Below, piece by piece: positions 41,501 to 64,000 of a stretch of 64,000 nucleotides of DNA. This stretch comes from Auanema rhodensis (taxonomy: Eukaryota; Animalia; Nematoda), in contig OZ059896.1 of the NCBI GenBank assembly GCA_964057225.1, positions 5,704,001 to 5,768,000 of the forward strand, given 5' to 3'. Made by a program: the position numbers and the translations under genes. Positions within the stretch are counted from its first letter, which is position 1. Each line of letters begins with the position of its first letter. The notes under the pieces are model-generated. The model was given only the letters and a program-made list of their open reading frames with translations. It did no database searches and was not told where the DNA came from.

Positions 41501-41703
41501 TTTTTAGATTCCTTTTTTCAAGGCAAAAACGATGGACAATGTAATTCAACGAAAAAATTAATTCTTCAGGGTGAAAATCGAGGATATAAGTGTGAACTTA
41601 TATCAGTTGATATCTTGGTGCATTTTCAAGCTAGCGCAAATCTGATAGTACAGATCGACGCAGCTTAAAAATCCGCATCGAATGCACTATACTACATTGA
41701 GAA

Positions 41704-41714
41704 TTTATGTTTAT
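41704..41714. other. Junction filler between satellite A and satellite B (TTTATGTTTAT)
   Basis: A matches up to CATTGAGAA (41703) and B starts at CTTTAATTTATGC (41715). AATTTATG at 41702-41709 duplicates 41719-41726, and TTTAT is repeated again at 41710-41714. Confidence 0.85.
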
Positions 41715-42954
41715 CTTTAATTTATGCTAATTAAATGTACACGTGATGTGCACTTGGTATGTAACTCGCTTCACGTGAAAGATAAAGAGATGCGGTTTTC
41801 AAAATTAGATTTCCCATGTCCATATTAGTCTAAAAACAAATTTTTATTGATATTGGTGCATGGTAACCATGACTTTGAAATTTACGTGAACTTTAATTTA
41901 TGCTAATTAAATGTACACGTGATGTGCACTTGGTATGTAACTCGCTTCACGTGAAAAATAAAGAGATGCGGTTTTCAAAATTAGATTTCCCATGTCAATA
42001 TTAGTCTAAAAACAAATTTTTATTGATATTGGTGCATGGTAACCATGACTTTGAAATTTACGTGAACTTTAATTTATGCTAATTAAATGTACACGTGATG
42101 TGCACTTGGTATGTAACTCGCTTCACGTGAAAAATAAAGAGATGCGGTTTTCAAAATTAGATTTCCCATGTCAATATTAGTCTAAAAACAAATTTTTATT
42201 GATATTGGTGCAGGGTAACCATGACTTTGAAATTTACGTGAACTTTAATTTATGCTAATTAAATGTACACGTGATGTGCACTTGGTATGTAACTCGCTTC
42301 ACGTGAAAGATAAAGAGATGCGGTTTTCAAAATTAGATTCCCCATGTCAATATTAGTCTAAAAACAAATTTTTATTGATATTGGTTCATGGTAACCATGA
42401 CTTTGAAATTTACGTGAACTTTAATTTATGCTAATTAAATGTACACGTGATGTGCACTTGGTATGTAACTCGCTTCACGTGAAAGATAAATGAGTGCGGT
42501 TTTCAAAATTAGATTTCCCATGTCCATATTAGTCTAAAAACAAATTTTTATTGATATTGGTGCATGGTAACCATGACTTTGAAATTTACGTGAACTTTAA
42601 TTTATGCTAATTAAATTTACACGTGATGTGCACTTGGTATGTAACTCGCTTCACGTGAAAGATAAAGAGATGCGGTTTTCAAAATTAGATTCCCCATGTC
42701 AATATTAGTCTAAAAACAAATTTTTATTGAGATTGGTGCATGGTAACCATGACTTTGAAATTTACGTGAACTTTAATTTATGCTAATTAAATGTACACGT
42801 GATGTGCACTTGGTATGTAACTCGCTTCACGTGAAAGATAAAGAGATGCGGTTTTCAAAATTAGATTTCCCATGTCCATATTAGTCTAAAAACAAATTTT
42901 TATTGATATTGGTTCATGGTAACCATGACTTTGAAATTTACGTGAACTTTAATT
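41715..42954 (+). repeat. Satellite B, short block: 176-bp monomer, 7 copies plus 8 bp
   Basis: TGCTAATTAAAT recurs at 41725, 41901, 42077 ... 42781. The block begins with CTTTAATT (41715) and ends with CTTTAATT (42947-42954), 1232 = 7x176 apart. Confidence 0.98.
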
Positions 42955-45900
42955 GCTAAATTATTTTGAAATATTTCGAAAAAAGTTTTGTCAAAATGTT
43001 TTTGGAAGCAATGTTGAGTGTACATGGAAACTCAACATACACTAATGCATCATTTTTCATACGATCATAACTAATTTTTTGTATTAAGCTTTTCTCAATG
43101 TAGTTTAGTGCATTCGATGCGGATTTTTAAGCTGCGTAGATCTGTGTTATCAGATTTGCGCTAGCTTAAAAATGCACCGAGATATCAACTGATATAAGTT
43201 CACACTTATATCCTCGATTTTCACCCTGAAGAATTAATTTTTTCGTTGAATAACATTGTCCATCGTTTTTGCCTCGAAAAAAGGAATCTAAAAACATCTA
43301 CTTTTTGCTAAATTATTTTGAAATATTTCGAAAAAAGTTTTGTCAAAATGTTTTTGGAAGCAATGTTGAAAACTCAACATACACTAATGCATCATTTTTC
43401 AAACGATCATAACTAATTTTTGTATTTAGCTTTTCTCAATGTAGTATAGTGCATTCGATGCGGATTTTTAAGCTGCGTCGATCTGTACTATCAGATTTGC
43501 GCTAGCTTAAAAACGCACCGAGATATCAACTGATATAAGTTCACACCTATATCCTCGATTTTCACCCTGAAGAATTAATTTTTTCGTTGAATAACATTGT
43601 CCATCGTTTTTGCCTCGAAAAAAGGAATCTAAAAACATCTACTTTTTGCTAAATTATTTTGAAATATTTCGAAAAAAGTTTTGTCAAAATGTTTTTGGAA
43701 GCAATGTTGAAAACTCAACATACACTAATGCATCATTTTTCAAACGATCATAACTAATTTTTGTATTTAGCTTTTCTCAATGTAGTATAGTGCATTCGAT
43801 GCGGATTTTTAAGCTGCGTAGATCTGTGTTATCAGATTTGCGCTAGCTTAAAAATGCACCGAGATATCAACTGATATAAGTTCACACTTATATCCTCGAT
43901 TTTCACCCTGAAGAATTAATTTTTTCGTTGAATAACATTGTCCATCGTTTTTGCCTCGAAAAAAGGAATCTAAAAACATCTACTTTTTGCTAAATTATTT
44001 TGAAATATTTCGAAAAAAGTTTTGTCAAAATGTTTTTGGAAGCAATGTTGAAAACTCAACATACACTAATGCATCATTTTTCAAACGATCATAACTAATT
44101 TTTGTATTTAGCTTTTCTCAATGTAGTATAGTGCATTCGATGCGGATTTTTAAGCTGCGTCGATCTGTACTATCAGATTTGCGCTAGCTTAAAAACGCAC
44201 CGAGATATCAACTGATATAAGTTCACACCTATATCCTCGATTTTCACCCTGAAGAATTAATTTTTTCGTTGAATAACATTGTCCATCGTTTTTGCCTTGA
44301 AAAAAGGAATCTAAAAACATCTACTTTTTGCTAAATTATTCTGAAATTTTTCGAAAAAATTTTTGTCAAAATGTTTTTGGAAGCAATGTTGAGTGTACAT
44401 GGAAACTCAACATACACTAATGCATCATTTTTCATACGATCATAACTAATTTTTTGTATTAAGCTTTTCTCAATGTAGTTTAGTGCATTCGATGCGGATT
44501 TTTAAGCTGCGTAGATCTGTGTTATCAGATTTGCGCTAGCTTAAAAATGCACCGAGATATCAACTGATATAAGTTCACACTTATATCCTCGATTTTCACC
44601 CTGAAGAATTAATTTTTTCGTTGAATAACATTGTCCATCGTTTTTGCCTCGAAAAAAGGAATCTAAAAACATCTACTTTTTGCTAAATTATTTTGAAATA
44701 TTTCGAAAAAAGTTTTGTCAAAATGTTTTTGGAAGCAATGTTGAAAACTCAACATACACTAATGCATCATTTTTCAAACGATCATAACTAATTTTTGTAT
44801 TTAGCTTTTCTCAATGTAGTATAGTGCATTCGATGCGGATTTTTAAGCTGCGTCGATCTGTACTATCAGATTTGCGCTAGCTTAAAAACGCACCGAGATA
44901 TCAACTGATATAAGTTCACACCTATATCCTCGATTTTCACCCTGAAGAATTAATTTTTTCGTTGAATAACATTGTCCATCGTTTTTGCCTTGAAAAAAGG
45001 AATCTAAAAACATCTACTTTTTGCTAAATTATTCTGAAATTTTTCGAAAAAATTTTTGTCAAAATGTTTTTGGAAGCAATTTTGAGTGTACATGGAAACT
45101 CAACATACACTAGTGCATCATTTTTCAAACGATCATAACTAATTTTTGTATTTAGCTTTTCTCAATGTAATATAGTGCATTCGATGCGGATTTTTAAGCT
45201 GCGTCGATCTGTGTTATCAGATTTGCGCTAGCTTAAAAATGCACCGAGATATCAACTGATATAAGTTCAAACTTATATCCTCGATTTTCACCCTGAAGAA
45301 TTAATTTTTTCGTTGAATAACATTGTCCATCGTTTTTGCTTCGAAAAAAGGAATCTGAATACATCTACTTTTCGCTAAATTATTTTGAAATATTTCGAAA
45401 AAATTTTTGTCAAAATGTTTTTGGAAGCAATGTTGAGTGTACATGGAAACTCAACATACACTAATGCATCATTTTTCAAACGATCATAACTAATTTTTGT
45501 ATTAAGCTTTTCTCAATGTAATATAGTGCATTCGATGCGGATTTTTAAGCTGCGTCGATCTGTGTCATCAGATTTGCGCTAGCTTAAAAATGCACCGAGA
45601 TATCAACTGATATAAGTTCAAACTTATATCCTCAATTTTCACCCTGAAGAATTAATTTTTTCGTTGAATAACATTGTCCATCGTTTTTGCTTTGAAAAAA
45701 GGAATCTAAAAACATCTACTTTTTGCTAAATTATTCTGAAATTTTTCGAAAAAATGTTTGTCAAAATGTTTTTGGAAGCAATTTTGAGTGTACATGGAAA
45801 CTCAACATACACTAATGCATCATTTTTCAAACGATCATAACTAATTTTTGTATTTAGCTTTTCTCAATGTAATATAGTGCATTCGATGCGGATTTTTAAG

Positions 45901-48169
45901 CTGCGTCGATCTGTGTCATCAGATTTGCGCTAGCTTAAAAATGCACCGAGATATCAACTGACATAAGTTCACACTTATATCCTCGATTTTCACCCTGAAG
46001 AATTAATTTTTTCGTTGAATAACATTGTCCATCGTTTTTGCCTCGAAAAAAGGAATCTAAAAACATCTACTTTTTGCTAAATTATTTTGAAATATTTCGA
46101 AAAAAGTTTTGTCAAAATGTTTTTGGAAGCAATGTTGAAAACTCAACATACACTAATGCATCATTTTTCAAACGATCATAACTAATTTTTGTATTTAGCT
46201 TTTCTCAATGTAATATAGTGCATTCGATGCGGATTTTTAAGCTGCGTCGATCTGTACTATCAGATTTGCGCTAGCTTAAAAACGCACCGAGATATCAACT
46301 GATATAAGTTCACACCTATATCCTCGATTTTCACCCTGAAGAATTAATTTTTTCGTTGAATAACATTGTCCATCGTTTTTGCCTTGAAAAAAGGAATTTA
46401 AAAACATCTACTTTTTGCTAAATTATTCTGAAATTTTTCGAAAAAATTTTTGTCAAAATGTTTTTGGAAGCAATTTTGAGTGTACATGGAAACTCAACAT
46501 ACACTAATGCATCATTTTTCAAACGATCATAACTAATTTTTGTATTAAGCTTTTCTCAATGTTATATAGTGCATTCGATGCGGATTTTTAAGCTGCGTCG
46601 ATCTGTGTCATCAGATTTGCGCTAGCTTAAAAATGCACCGAGATATCAACTGATATAAGTTCAAACTTATATCCTCGATTTTCACCCTGAAGAATTAATT
46701 TTTTCGTTGAATAACATTGTCCATCGTTTTTGCTTCGAAAAAAGGAATCTAAAAACATCTACTTTTTGCTAAATTATTCTGAAATTTTTCGAAAAAATTT
46801 TTGTCAAAATGTTTTTGGAAGCAATTTTGAGTGTACATGGAAACTCAACATACACTAATGCATCATTTTTCAAACGATCATAACTAATTTTTGTATTTAG
46901 CTTTTCTCAATGTAATATAGTGCATTCGATGCGGATTTTTAAGCTGCGTCGATCTGTGTCATCAGATTTGCGCTAGCTTAAAAATGCACCGAGATATCAA
47001 CTGACATAAGTTCACACTTATATCCTCGATTTTCACCCTGAAGAATTAATTTTTTCGTTGAATAACATTGTCCATCGTTTTTGCCTCGAAAAAAGGAATC
47101 TAAAAACATCTACTTTTTGCTAAATTATTTTGAAATATTTCGAAAAAAGTTTTGTCAAAATGTTTTTGGAAGCAATGTTGAAAACTCAACATACACTAAT
47201 GCATCATTTTTCAAACGATCATAACTAATTTTTGTATTTAGCTTTTCTCAATGTAATATAGTGCATTCGATGCGGATTTTTAAGCTGCGTCGATCTGTAC
47301 TATCAGATTTGCGCTAGCTTAAAAACGCACCGAGATATCAACTGATATAAGTTCACACCTATATCCTCGATTTTCACCCTGAAGAATTAATTTTTTCGTT
47401 GAATAACATTGTCCATCGTTTTTGCCTTGAAAAAAGGAATTTAAAAACATCTACTTTTTGCTAAATTATTCTGAAATTTTTCGAAAAAATTTTTGTCAAA
47501 ATGTTTTTGGAAGCAATTTTGAGTGTACATGGAAACTCAACATACACTAATGCATCATTTTTCAAACGATCATAACTAATTTTTGTATTAAGCTTTTCTC
47601 AATGTAATATAGTGCATTCGATGCGGATTTTTAAGCTGCGTCGATCTGTGTCATCAGATTTGCGCTAGCTTAAAAATGCACCGAGATATCAACTGATATA
47701 AGTTCAAACTTATATCCTCGATTTTCACCCTGAAGAATTAATTTTTTCGTTGAATAACATTGTCCATCGTTTTTGCTTCGAAAAAAGGAATCTAAAAACA
47801 TCTACTTTTTGCTAAATTATTCTGAAATTTTTCGAAAAAATTTTTGTCAAAATGTTTTTGGAAGCAATTTTGAGTGTACATGGAAACTCAACATACACTA
47901 ATGCATCATTTTTCAAACGATCATAACTAATTTTTGTATTTAGCTTTTCTCAATGTAATATAGTGCATTCGATGCGGATTTTTAAGCTGCGTCGATCTGT
48001 GTCATCAGATTTGCGCTAGCTTAAAAATGCACCGAGATATCAACTGACATAAGTTCACACTTATATCCTCGATTTTCACCCTGAAGAATTAATTTTTTCG
48101 TTGAATAACATTGTCCATCGTTTTTGCCTTGAAAAAAGAAATCTAAAAACATCTACTTTTTGCTAAATT
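42953..48169 (-). repeat. Satellite A in inverted orientation: 15 monomers (341, 342 or 351 bp), divergent subfamily
   Basis: Reverse complement of the 351-bp monomer, e.g. GATGCGGATTTTTAAGCTGCG and TTTTCACCCTGAAGAATTAA. The landmark GCATCATTTTT lies at 43047, 43389, 43730, 44071, 44422, 44764, 45115, 45466, 45817, 46158, 46509, 46860, 47201, 47552 and 47903. Confidence 0.98.
45700..48169 (-). repeat. 3-monomer higher-order repeat (1043 bp = 351+351+341) in the inverted A block
   Basis: The 10-bp deletion occurs after 46138 and 47181. The CTGACATAAG allele recurs three times at 1043-bp spacing (about 45962, 47005, 48048). Start boundary is approximate. Confidence 0.8.
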
Positions 48170-48172
48170 TCT

Positions 48173-48233
48173 AAATCTAATTTTGAAAACCGCATCTCTT
48201 TATCTTTCACGTGAAGCGAGTTACATACCAAGT
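48173..48233 (-). repeat. 61-bp inverted fragment of satellite B; forms an inverted repeat with 48262-48321
   Basis: AAATCTAATTTTGAAAACCGCATCTCTTTATCTTTCACGTGAAGCGAGTTACATACCAAGT is the reverse complement of the B segment ACTTGGTATG...AAATTAGATTT. It is preceded by a TCT filler at 48170-48172. Confidence 0.95.
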
Positions 48234-51200
48234 ATGCTAATTAAATGTACACGTGATGTGCACTTGGTATGTAACTCGCTTCACGTGAAAGACAAAGAGA
48301 TGCGGTTTTCAAAATTAGATTCCCCATGTCCATATTAGTCTAAAAACAAATTTTTATTGATATTGGTTCATGGTAACCATGACTTTGAAATTTACGTGAA
48401 CTTTAATTTATGCTAATTAAATGTACACGTGATGTGCACTTGGTATGTAACTCGCTTCACGTGAAAAATAAAGAGATGCGGTTTTCAAAATTAGATTTCC
48501 CATGTCAATATTAGTCTAAAAACAAATTTTTATTGATATTGGTGCAGGGTAACCATGACTTTGAAATTTACGTGAACTTTAATTTATGCTAATTAAATGT
48601 ACACGTGATGTGCACTTGGTATGTAACTCGCTTCACGTGAAAGATAAAGAGATGCGGTTTTCAAAATTAGATTCCCCATGTCAATATTAGTCTAAAAACA
48701 AATTTTTATTGATATTGGTTCATGGTAACCATGACTTTGAAATTTACGTGAACTTTAATTTATGCTAATTAAATGTACACGTGATGTGCACTTGGTATGT
48801 AACTCGCTTCACGTGAAAGATAAAGAGATGCGGTTTTCAAAATTAGATTTCCCATGTCCATATTAGTCTAAAAACAAATTTTTATTGATATTGGTGCATG
48901 GTAACCATGACTTTGAAATTTACGTGAACTTTAATTTATGCTAATTAAATTTACACGTGATGTGCACTTGGTATGTAACTCGCTTCATGTGAAAGATAAA
49001 GAGATGCGGTTTTCAAAATTAGATTCCCCATGTCCATATTAGTCTAAAAACAAATTGTTATTGATGTTGGTGCATGGTAACCATGACTTTGAAATTTACG
49101 TGAACTTTAATTTATGCTAATTGAATTTACACGTGATGTGCACTTGGTATGTAACTCGCTTCATGTGAAAGATAAAGAGATGCGGTTTTCAAAATTAGAT
49201 TTCCCATGTCCATATTAGTCTAAAAACAAATTTTTATTGATATTGGTGCATGGTAACCATGACTTTGAAATTTACGTGAACTTTAATTTATGCTAATTAA
49301 ATTTACACGTGATGTGCACTTGGTATGTAACTCGCTTCATGTGAAAGATAAAGAGATGCGGTTTACAAAATTAGATTCCCCATGTCCATATTAGTCTAAA
49401 AACAAATTTTTATTGATATTGGTGCATGGTAACCATGACTTTGAAATTTACGTGAACTTTAATTTATGCTAATTAAATGTACACGTGATGTGCACTTGGT
49501 ATGTAACTCGCTTCACGTGAAAGATAAAGAGATGCGGTTTTCAAAATTAGATTCCCCATGTCAATATTAGTCTAAAAACAAATTTTTATTGAGATTGGTG
49601 CATGGTAACCATGACTTTGAAATTTACGTGAACTTTAATTTATGCTAATTAAAAGTACACGTGATGTGCACTTGGTATGTAACTCGCTTCACGTGAAAGA
49701 TAAAGAGATGCGGTTTTCAAAATTAGATTTCCCATGTCCATATTAGTCTAAAAACAAATTTTTATTGATATTGGTGCATGGTAACCATGACTTTGAAATT
49801 TACGTGAACTTTAATTTATGCTAATTAAATTTACACGTGATGTGCACTTGGTATGTAACTCGCTTCATGTGAAAGATAAAGAGATGCGGTTTTCAAAATT
49901 AGATTCCCCATGTCAATATTAGTCTAAAAACAAATTTTTATTGAGATTGGTGCATGGTAACCATGACTTTGAAATTTACGTGAACTTTAATTTATGCTAA
50001 TTAAATGTACACGTGATGTGCACTTGGTATGTAACTCGCTTCACGTGAAAGATAAAGAGATGCGGTTTTCAAAATTAGATTTCTCATGTCCATATTAGTC
50101 TAAAAACAAATTTTTATTGATATTGGTTCATGGTAACCATGACTTTGAAATTTACGTGAACTTTAATTTATGCTAATTAAATGTACACGTGATGTGCACT
50201 TGGTATGTAACTCGCTTCACGTGAAAGATAAAGAGATGCGGTTTTCAAAATTAGATTTCCCATGTCCATATTAGTCTAAAAACAAATTTTTATTGATATT
50301 GGTGCATGGTAACCATGACTTTGAAATTTACGTGAACTTTAATTTATGCTAATTAAATGTACACGTGATGTGCACTTGGTATGTAACTCGCTTCACGTGA
50401 AAGATAAAGAGATGCGGTTTTCAAAATTAGATTCCCCATGTCCATATTAGTCTAAAAACAAATTTTTATTGATATTGGTGCATGGTAACCATGACTTTGA
50501 AATTTACGTGAACTTTAATTTATGCTAATTAAATGTACACGTGATGTGCACTTGGTATGTAACTCGCTTCACGTGAAAGATAAAGAGATGCGGTTTTCAA
50601 AATTAGATTTCCCATGTCCATATTAGTCTAAAAACAAATTTTTATTGATATTGGTGCATGGTAACCATGACTTTGAAATTTACGTGAACTTTAATTTATG
50701 CTAATTAAATGTACACGTGATGTGCACTTGGTATGTAACTCGCTTCATGTGAAAGATAAAGAGATGCGGTTTTCAAAATTAGATTGCCCATGTCCATATT
50801 AGTCTAAAAACAAATTGTTATTGATGTTGGTGCATGGTAACCATGACTTTGAAATTTACGTGAACTTTAATTTATGCTAATTAAATGTACACGTGATGTG
50901 CACTTGGTATGTAACTCGCTTCACGTGAAAGATAAAGAGATGCGGTTTTCAAAATTAGATTCCCCATGTCAATATTAGTCTAAAAACAAATTTTTATTGA
51001 TATTGGTGCAGGGTAACCATGACTTTGAAATTTACGTGAACTTTAATTTATGCTAATTAAATGTACACGTGATGTGCACTTGGTATGTAACTCGCTTCAC
51101 GTGAAAGATAAAGAGATGCGGTTTTCAAAATTAAATTCCCCATGTCAAGATTAGTCTAAAAACAAATTTTTATTGATATTGGTGCAGGGTAACCATGACT

Positions 51201-63200: not shown

Positions 63201-64000
63201 TTAAATGTACACGTGATGTGCACTTGGTATGTAACTCGCTTCATGTGAAAGATAAAGAGATGCGGTTTTCAAAATTAGATTCCCCATGTCCATATTAGTC
63301 TAAAAACAAATTGTTATTGATGTTGGTGCATGGTAACCATGACTTTGAAATTTACGTGAACTTTAATTTATGCTAATTAAATGTACACGTGATGTGCACT
63401 TGGTATGTAACTCGCTTCACGTGAAGGATAAAGAGATGCGGTTTTCAAAATTAGATTCCCCATGTCAATATTAGTCTAAAAACAAATTTTTATTGATATT
63501 GGTGCAGGGTAACCATGACTTTGAAATTTACGTGAACTTTAATTTATGCTAATTAAATGTACACGTGATGTGCACTTGGTATGTAACTCGCTTCACGTTA
63601 AAGATAAAGAGATGCGGTTTTCAAAATTAAATTTCCCATGTCCATATTAGTCTAAAAACAAATTTTTATTGACATTGGTTCATGGTAACCATGACTTTGA
63701 AATTTACGTGAACTTTAATTAATGCTAATTAAATGTACACGTGATGTGCACTTGGTATGTAACTCGCTTCACGTGAAAGATAAAGAGATGCGGTTTTCAA
63801 AATTAGATTCCCCATGTCAATATTAGTCTAAAAACAAATTTTTATTGATATTGGTGCAGGGTAACCATGACTTTGAAATTTACGTGAACTTTAATTTATG
63901 CTAATTAAATGTACACGTGATGTGCACTTGGTATGTAACTCGCTTCACGTGAAAGATAAAGAGATGCGGTTTTCAAAATTAGATTTCCCATGTCCATATT
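48233..64000 (+). repeat. Satellite B, main array: 176-bp monomer, about 89.6 copies (continues beyond window end)
   Basis: The same phase (TTAAATGTAC) falls at 48241, 50881, 53521, 56161, 58801 and 61441, each 2640 = 15x176 apart, so there is no net indel between these points. About 32% GC. Confidence 0.99.
55141..60100 (+). repeat. 15-monomer (2640 bp) duplication in satellite B
   Basis: The rare allele TATTGACA occurs at 55929 and 58569, and TTTCACAATT at 57112 and 59752. The allele order from about 55141-57400 is repeated at about 57781-60040. Boundaries are approximate. Confidence 0.8.

Follow-up and report, generated by a model that had tools for sequence, protein, structure and literature searches.

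An inverted block of a 351-bp satellite inserted without target loss into a 176-bp satellite array of Auanema rhodensis, with a fold-back copy at one junction

How one tandem repeat comes to lie inside the array of another is the question raised by a 64,000-nt stretch of the nematode Auanema rhodensis (OZ059896.1, positions 5,704,001-5,768,000; hereafter the window), in which a block of a 351-bp satellite (A) interrupts, in inverted orientation, an array of a 176-bp satellite (B). The movement of satellites and the seeding of new arrays are still argued mainly from indirect evidence, and clean, undegraded satellite junctions are rare because array edges decay. At this locus, both junctions were kept at base resolution, with no loss of target bases, a snap-back copy at one end, and the entry and exit of satellite A at one phase of its unit beside a short motif. 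The layout was established with Tandem Repeats Finder (TRF) and by direct reading, and both consensus units were then searched by blastn across the whole window. A single event of synthesis-dependent break repair or template switching is proposed as the origin of the insert, with a probability of about 0.5.

Seven B monomers and the first eight bases (CTTTAATT) of a split monomer occupy positions 41715-42954 on the plus strand, with anchors every 176 bp (TRF), and the array is resumed in phase at 48233, from which about 89.6 monomers run to position 64000 on the same strand and past the end of the window (TRF and anchor spacing). All 94 B anchor spacings were equal to 176, and the uninterrupted B corresponded to the array consensus everywhere. 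When the 5278 bp at 42955-48232 were removed, the spacing across the site was 352 (2 × 176), which means that B neither lost nor gained bases, as an earlier reading made from the sequence only had maintained in placing the stop of B at 42954 and its resumption at 48233. At this locus, inverted A was genuinely inserted into a B array that had once been continuous. The possibility that the block is the edge of a larger inversion was ruled out by the exact phase continuity of B.

An integrated circle would be expected to leave its own sequence alone, but the insert is not pure A: 63 further bases were found at 48170-48232, made up of a filler and 59-60 nt of inverted B. No target-site duplication was found at the insertion site, where B gained no base, and no non-satellite sequence appeared at the insert ends in the blastn search of the consensus units across the window. 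These two absences bear on the involvement of a mobile element, either a Helitron or a transposon with internal tandem repeats, or on the retroposition of a satellite RNA. Satellites do at times spread inside transposons (PMC11610590), but the insert consists entirely of A, B or a 3-4-nt filler, has no poly(A), and does not end in the Helitron TC...CTRR pattern in either orientation, and no Rfam family was matched in a search for RNA genes in the A and B units, so that such an origin appears extremely unlikely.

The inverted A block (42955-48169, minus strand) comprises 15 monomers plus a terminal repeat of GCTAAATT, as delimited by TRF, motif positions and monomer lengths. It opens with TTGCTAAATT at 42953 and closes with the same motif at 48160-48169, and on the plus strand this motif was confined to 42953-48169, with 15 exact copies and one copy with a single mismatch at 45372; TRF assigned 15.0 copies to the same interval. 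The monomer lengths were, in order, 352, 341, 341, 341, 352, 341, 351, 351, 351, 341, 351, 351, 341, 351 and 351, that is, six of 341, two of 352 and seven of 351, with a sum of 5207 (15 × 351 − 60 + 2). In this respect, all the numbers of the sequence-only reading were reproduced, namely the ends at TTGCTAAATT and the distance of 5207 with six 10-bp deletions and two 1-bp insertions. Its statement that this is a whole number of monomers stood for the end phases, which are equal, but not for the length, as GCTAAATT is present at both A ends (8 bases, or 10 with the TT shared with B). These identical bases make the A part 15 units plus 8-10 bases, with ends that overlap rather than abut, and the first and last end pieces, which share their phase, add up to one unit plus 8-10 nt. 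End phases would agree within 10 bases in approximately 3-6% of random A fragments; taken alone, the agreement is suggestive, and it becomes stronger only when combined with the similarity at the left junction described below.

Equal end phases at such a low chance frequency are a point in favour of an A circle, that is, extrachromosomal circular DNA (eccDNA) of several units released by intra-array recombination, which would have been opened and ligated into a blunt B break, leaving the fold-back and the filler as by-products. The absence of target loss agrees with this route, the same signature has been proposed for the Rsp-like arrays of Drosophila (PMC7403614), and the eccDNA of flies and beetles is rich in satellites (PMC7403614, PMC11610590). 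However, a circle opened once and integrated, as had been put forward for this block, predicts abutting or slightly trimmed ends, and this simple form is not supported by ends that overlap by 8-10 bases together with a 60-nt snap-back and a filler. The overlap needs the extra assumption that the ends were cut about 8 nt apart and then filled in, the 63 bases beyond A have to be added, and the equal phase may equally stem from entry and exit guided by the look-alike patch or from a fragile site in A. A circle that was cut in a staggered manner at GCTAAATT, or that served as the template of rolling synthesis, and that entered the B break at the look-alike motif is retained as a tentative but rather unlikely explanation. 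Sequence by itself has no power to tell a circular from a linear source or template.

The right junction holds the most distinctive structure of the locus. After the A end, an orphan filler of 3-4 nt, TCT(A), lies at 48170-48173 (direct reading), followed on the minus strand by an inverted B fragment at 48174-48233, which matched positions 38-97 of the B consensus in 60 of 60 bases by blastn and was the only minus-strand B match, and indeed the sole off-pattern element, in the 64-kb window. An inverted-repeat search showed that this fragment pairs with 48262-48321 (plus strand, within the split B monomer) over 60 nt with 98% complementarity (59/60), the two arms being 28 nt apart; the intervening loop (48234-48261, plus strand) consists of the opening bases of the resumed B monomer. 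The folding of this region as single-stranded DNA gave a hairpin of −68.4 kcal/mol, compared with −13.5 ± 2.8 for shuffled sequences (z = −19). The lone mismatch between the arms, a C at 48293, is a change found in only one of 97 B monomers and therefore probably post-dates the event. The fragment has the form of a templated insertion copied, in inverted orientation, from close to the break, with a 28-nt loop (snap-back). Furthermore, the CT of the filler and the AAAT of B together repeat the CTAAAT of the preceding A end, which, given the few bases involved, may fit a brief abortive templated extension. No microhomology was found at the junction between A and the filler, while T at 48233 and TT at 42953-42954 are microhomologies within the short range of 1-6 nt expected of a polymerase-theta repair scar.

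The inverted B fragment was identical to 18 of the 97 B monomers, so that the adjacent flank is its likeliest template and others are possible. An inverted copy, or a transposed piece, of a pre-existing boundary from B to A would likewise deliver it, in this case from the donor and not by snap-back, and the exact match to the B consensus and to those 18 monomers is what such a source allows, as the template need not be the adjacent flank. On the other hand, the equal A phases and the short loop would have to be put down to coincidence (the probability of a loop no longer than 30 nt being about 17%), the window contained no boundary of this kind, and its A/B boundary is formed at different phases. 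The copying of a boundary is thus very unlikely.

At the left junction, the TT at 42953-42954 is common to B and to inverted A, forming a 2-nt microhomology (direct reading, with the junction windows aligned). At the break, B bears TATGCTAATTA and inverted A bears TTTGCTAAATTA. The local similarity of 24-nt windows was scored for all 123,552 ways of pairing an A phase, on either strand, with a B phase, and the left junction, where TACTTTTTGCTAAATTA of inverted A is aligned with TAATTTATGCT-AATTA of B, obtained a score of 10, reached by only 0.8% of these phase pairs. The motif shared by A and B at the break, noted in the sequence-only reading, was confirmed as an unusually close match for these two families. 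The exit of A scored 8 (6%) against the point at which B resumes and 5, the median, against the entry into inverted B. Overall, no similarity between A and B was found, the best local alignment being equal to the shuffle mean, which makes them unrelated families and the shared motif something other than a conserved box.

The same scoring was applied to the older boundary between A and B, both on the plus strand, at 41704-41714. By direct reading, the last A bases are CATTGAGA (to 41703), and they are followed by about 11 bases, ATTTATGTTTA, resembling degenerate B, with regular B from 41715. This boundary (scored at 41703) reached 5, the median of all phase pairs, and no homeology was found there. 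With one of the two A/B boundaries of the window using the patch, it is not a general rule at the locus; as the left score lies in the top 0.8%, the patch probably mattered at the left junction. The older boundary, having no look-alike patch, would have arisen differently from the left junction of the inverted block.

Synthesis-dependent repair of a break, or a template switch, would bring these features together in one event. In the order of steps that we infer, a break or a fork collapse would have struck the B array between positions 8 and 9 of one of its monomers, and the 3′ ends would have been kept, hence no B base was lost. The left 3′ end, ...CTTTAATT, may have paired by its terminal TT before GCTAAATT of an A in the opposite orientation, or joined an A end there, and A would then have been copied, from an array or from a circle, or captured by the ligation of a fragment, from one GCTAAATT to a later one. 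On the right side, the bottom-strand 3′ end would have folded back with a 1-base pairing (T/A, 48233/48262) and a 28-nt loop, copying about 60 nt of its own strand rightwards. This geometry predicts the reverse complement of 48262-48321 directly to the left of 48233, exactly what was observed. The extended right end would finally have joined the intact A end, ...TTGCTAAATT, through the 3-4-nt filler, and the A block, with at least three different monomers, would have been remodelled by unequal exchange to 15 copies, either in the source beforehand or in place afterwards. The enzymes would be those of polymerase-theta-type end joining, that is, synthesis-dependent microhomology-mediated end joining (SD-MMEJ), or those of replicative template switching. 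Products documented for polymerase theta and SD-MMEJ include snap-back templated extension, short fillers and minimal microhomology (PMC4912351, PMC5068794, PMC5728401).

Several features of the locus speak for this repair. The keeping of all target bases fits repair from unresected 3′ ends, and the overlap of the A ends by 8-10 nt is predicted by copying past the entry point on a template, be it linear or circular. Moreover, the insertion has an A array in the opposite orientation only 1.24 kb away, which fits a local strand switch, and the 2-nt overlap on the left lies in a homeology patch of the top 0.8%, in contrast to the older boundary, which has none. In particular, the sole aberrant element in 64 kb sits exactly at the junction and is complementary to the flank in 59 of 60 positions.

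The composition of the block bears on both its founder and its donor. A tree was built from the 15 inverted monomers and 118 neighbouring plus-strand A monomers, in which the inverted monomers formed three separate clades (monomers 1, 3 and 5; 2, 4, 6, 10 and 13; and 7, 8, 9, 11, 12, 14 and 15), and their common ancestor was the root of the entire set. The block shares old polymorphisms of the family, for example at columns 193/194, where G-T and A-C were each found in about half of the plus-strand A monomers. It also has private alleles that appeared in none of the 118: the 10-bp deletion (6 of 15 monomers), C at column 13 (7 of 15), C at column 195 (6 of 15) and A at column 250 (4 of 15). 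The order of the monomers is a-b-a′-b-a-b-d′-d″-c-b-d-c-b-d-c; in the left part, a 693-bp dimer is repeated three times with copies differing at 4 positions, and in the right part, a 1043-bp trimer is repeated 2.3 times with copies differing at 2 positions. Monomer 3 (43646-43986) combines the half of lineage b that carries the 10-bp deletion with the other half of lineage a, and it is likely, from this mosaic, to be a b/a recombinant produced by unequal crossing-over within the block.

The three lineages mean either that three or more distinct monomers arrived with the insert or that the block has evolved in place for a long time, and the founder would have had at least three monomers if the three lineages entered together. 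As unequal exchange altered the copy number, the figure of 15 has no special meaning; the exact 15-mer described in the sequence-only reading is therefore present, but it is not necessarily the number that was inserted, given the three lineages and the dimer and trimer repeats. For the same reasons the circle meets a further difficulty, since no single small circle suffices for three lineages and two higher-order periods, nor do these periods fit the rolling copying of such a circle. That the visible neighbouring array is not the source speaks in favour of a circle. The visible 41.7-kb plus-strand array was rejected as a recent donor, with the 10-bp deletion in 0 of 118 monomers and distances that did not fall towards the junction. 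The nearest plus-strand A monomers differed from the block by 1.4-2.9%, and the array runs beyond the window.

A number of points weigh against repair by synthesis. First, the 5.2-kb insert and the 60-nt snap-back far exceed the typical insertions of polymerase theta, which are of tens of bases, and the small size expected of such a scar is at odds with an insert that now measures 5278 bp. A 60-nt snap-back with kilobases of foreign sequence would instead imply longer synthesis, of the break-induced kind or like synthesis-dependent strand annealing (SDSA), with template switches, or else the capture of a pre-formed A fragment. Second, template switching alone leaves the equal phase of A entry and exit unexplained; the copying needs a reason to stop, which may be that the template came to an end, that A is fragile at this site or that A resembles the right B end there (homeology in the top 6%). 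Third, the exit of A shows no hybrid patch with B, both patches being intact. Fourth, the private alleles of the block were absent from the 118 visible monomers of the nearby opposite-orientation array, which argues that this array was not the recent template. Finally, no piece bridging a junction was found among the listed short-read contigs of 60-100 nt considered below, where the many joints in runs X1 and X2 have sides shorter than 30 nt. The alternative of a template switch had already been offered in the sequence-only reading; the snap-back and the filler are marks of synthesis-dependent end joining or template switching.

The same lack of a bridging piece among the listed contigs, together with the difficulty of assembling long satellite arrays, lends some weight to an assembly artefact, in which a chimeric read or a false join would have put A inside B. 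Nevertheless, A and B offer an assembler no overlap on which to join them, and only 1 chimera in 176 would be expected to bring B back exactly in phase. Moreover, the variants and the repeat structure of the block are its own, and the right junction is built like a biological repair scar; these arguments, although indirect, render an artefact very unlikely. The contigs in question were Logan short-read contigs from runs X1-X13, representing at least four organisms, placed on 42650-48600, with pieces of 60-100 nt and word depths of 1e5-1e7. They neither confirm nor refute the junctions. The share of sampled words found was 0.82-0.83 in X1 and X2 (organism A), about 0.6 in X3-X9 (organisms A, B and C) and about 0.25 in X10-X13 (organisms C and D). 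Hence, both satellites are present in at least four organisms (about 0.6 in three and about 0.25 in the fourth), and the families predate these taxa or strains. The higher share in X1 and X2 might mean that the private variants of the block are strain-specific, which run depth explains equally well.

In addition, many short contigs of X1 and X2, and of these two runs only, break at B positions of approximately 94-97 (42688-42691 and 48319), with sides shorter than 30 nt; the inverted fragment, too, ends at this point of B. The broken contigs go on into other phases of B, into A or into inverted B, one example being a join of 42691 to 48174 that forms a near-perfect head-to-head B/B. These breaks could represent a real breakpoint hotspot, a variable column at which unitigs end or a library artefact.

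With regard to the rest of the window, the plus-strand A array occupies positions 1-41703 with about 119 monomers of 351 bp and extends past the window start; TRF gave a period of 351, 118.8 copies and 96% matches. The length discipline of both arrays is very strict, as 117 of the 118 A spacings were 351 bp and all B units were 176 bp. A weak 2- and 4-unit periodicity in divergence was observed in the forward A array, and three-monomer variant patterns of B recur on either side of the insert. Furthermore, the plus-strand array (at least 41.7 kb) and the inverted block (5.2 kb) oppose each other across 1.25 kb of B, making up a large, imperfect palindrome with the potential to fold into hairpins or, through intrachromatid exchange, to invert the B between its arms; at present, this B is unflipped and in phase with the B on the right.

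The locus is a good test case and an anchor for a genome-wide catalogue of A/B junctions, although alone it does not separate a circle from template switching. If many A/B junctions share the phase and the motif, a preferred site of breakage or entry would be indicated. Were the circle to be the true origin, the locus would document, at base resolution, the colonisation of one satellite by another through circles, in an organism for which no such case has been described, and the A unit would then have a preferred point of opening or entry. No papers were found in the literature on satellites of these unit lengths.

Several known systems can be compared with this locus. Fork stalling and template switching or microhomology-mediated break-induced replication (FoSTeS/MMBIR) produces inverted copies of nearby sequence, with short inverted repeats at the switch and several junctions per event. 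The fold-back rearrangements of this class resemble the present one in the short inverted repeats at the switch, in the multiple junctions of one event and perhaps in the inverted copy of nearby sequence, but here the process came back to the exact base that it had left, and the inverted A does not match the present monomers of the adjacent array. In polymerase-theta-type or SD-MMEJ repair, likewise, a 3′ end that has folded back on very little pairing makes an inverted copy of its own flank and is joined by short microhomology or a few extra bases, and the ends are kept. However, the known insertions are mostly shorter than 30-50 nt (PMC4912351, PMC5068794, PMC5728401), while the snap-back here measures 60 nt, and 5.2 kb of a foreign satellite, or a smaller founder, was also brought in.

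Among satellites, transitions between divergent monomers at short shared motifs were described in Meloidogyne by Mestrovic et al. in 2013, who proposed cut-and-paste or illegitimate recombination (PMC3694981). The transition at a short shared motif is common to both cases; here, in contrast to the Meloidogyne satellites, the patch is not a conserved box, and only one of the two A/B boundaries in the window uses it. In Tribolium, satellites occur on eccDNA, and insertion by circles has been proposed (PMC11610590). The closest parallel is given by Sproul et al. (2020), who reported Rsp-like inserts into 1.688 arrays on the X chromosome of Drosophila simulans and D. mauritiana, with 4-7-bp microhomology at the junctions, variable and complex second junctions and a later expansion by unequal exchange (PMC7403614). 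In that work, the first and last truncated repeats of a re-integrated circle were expected to form one monomer, a pattern found in six arrays, and microhomology-mediated end joining (MMEJ), FoSTeS/MMBIR and SDSA with template switching were offered as alternatives (PMC7403614). The insertion of a satellite into a satellite, the end-phase signature and the proposal of a circle are already published for Drosophila, and the idea of the sequence-only reading, of a direct record of one satellite colonising another, is not new, as the same signature and proposal are found in that study (PMC7403614).

Both cases have in common a complex satellite within the arrays of another, short microhomology, a complex second junction and expansion by unequal exchange. 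In contrast to the Rsp-like inserts, the end pieces here add up to one unit plus 8-10 nt, no target base is lost, where deletions are frequent at the fly junctions, the insert stands in inverted orientation with an array of its own family 1.24 kb away, and a 60-nt snap-back marks the second junction, all of this at a single locus read from sequence alone. The Auanema locus is a clean and fresh example of such an insertion, particular in its zero target loss, its overlapping end phases, its inverted orientation and its long snap-back.

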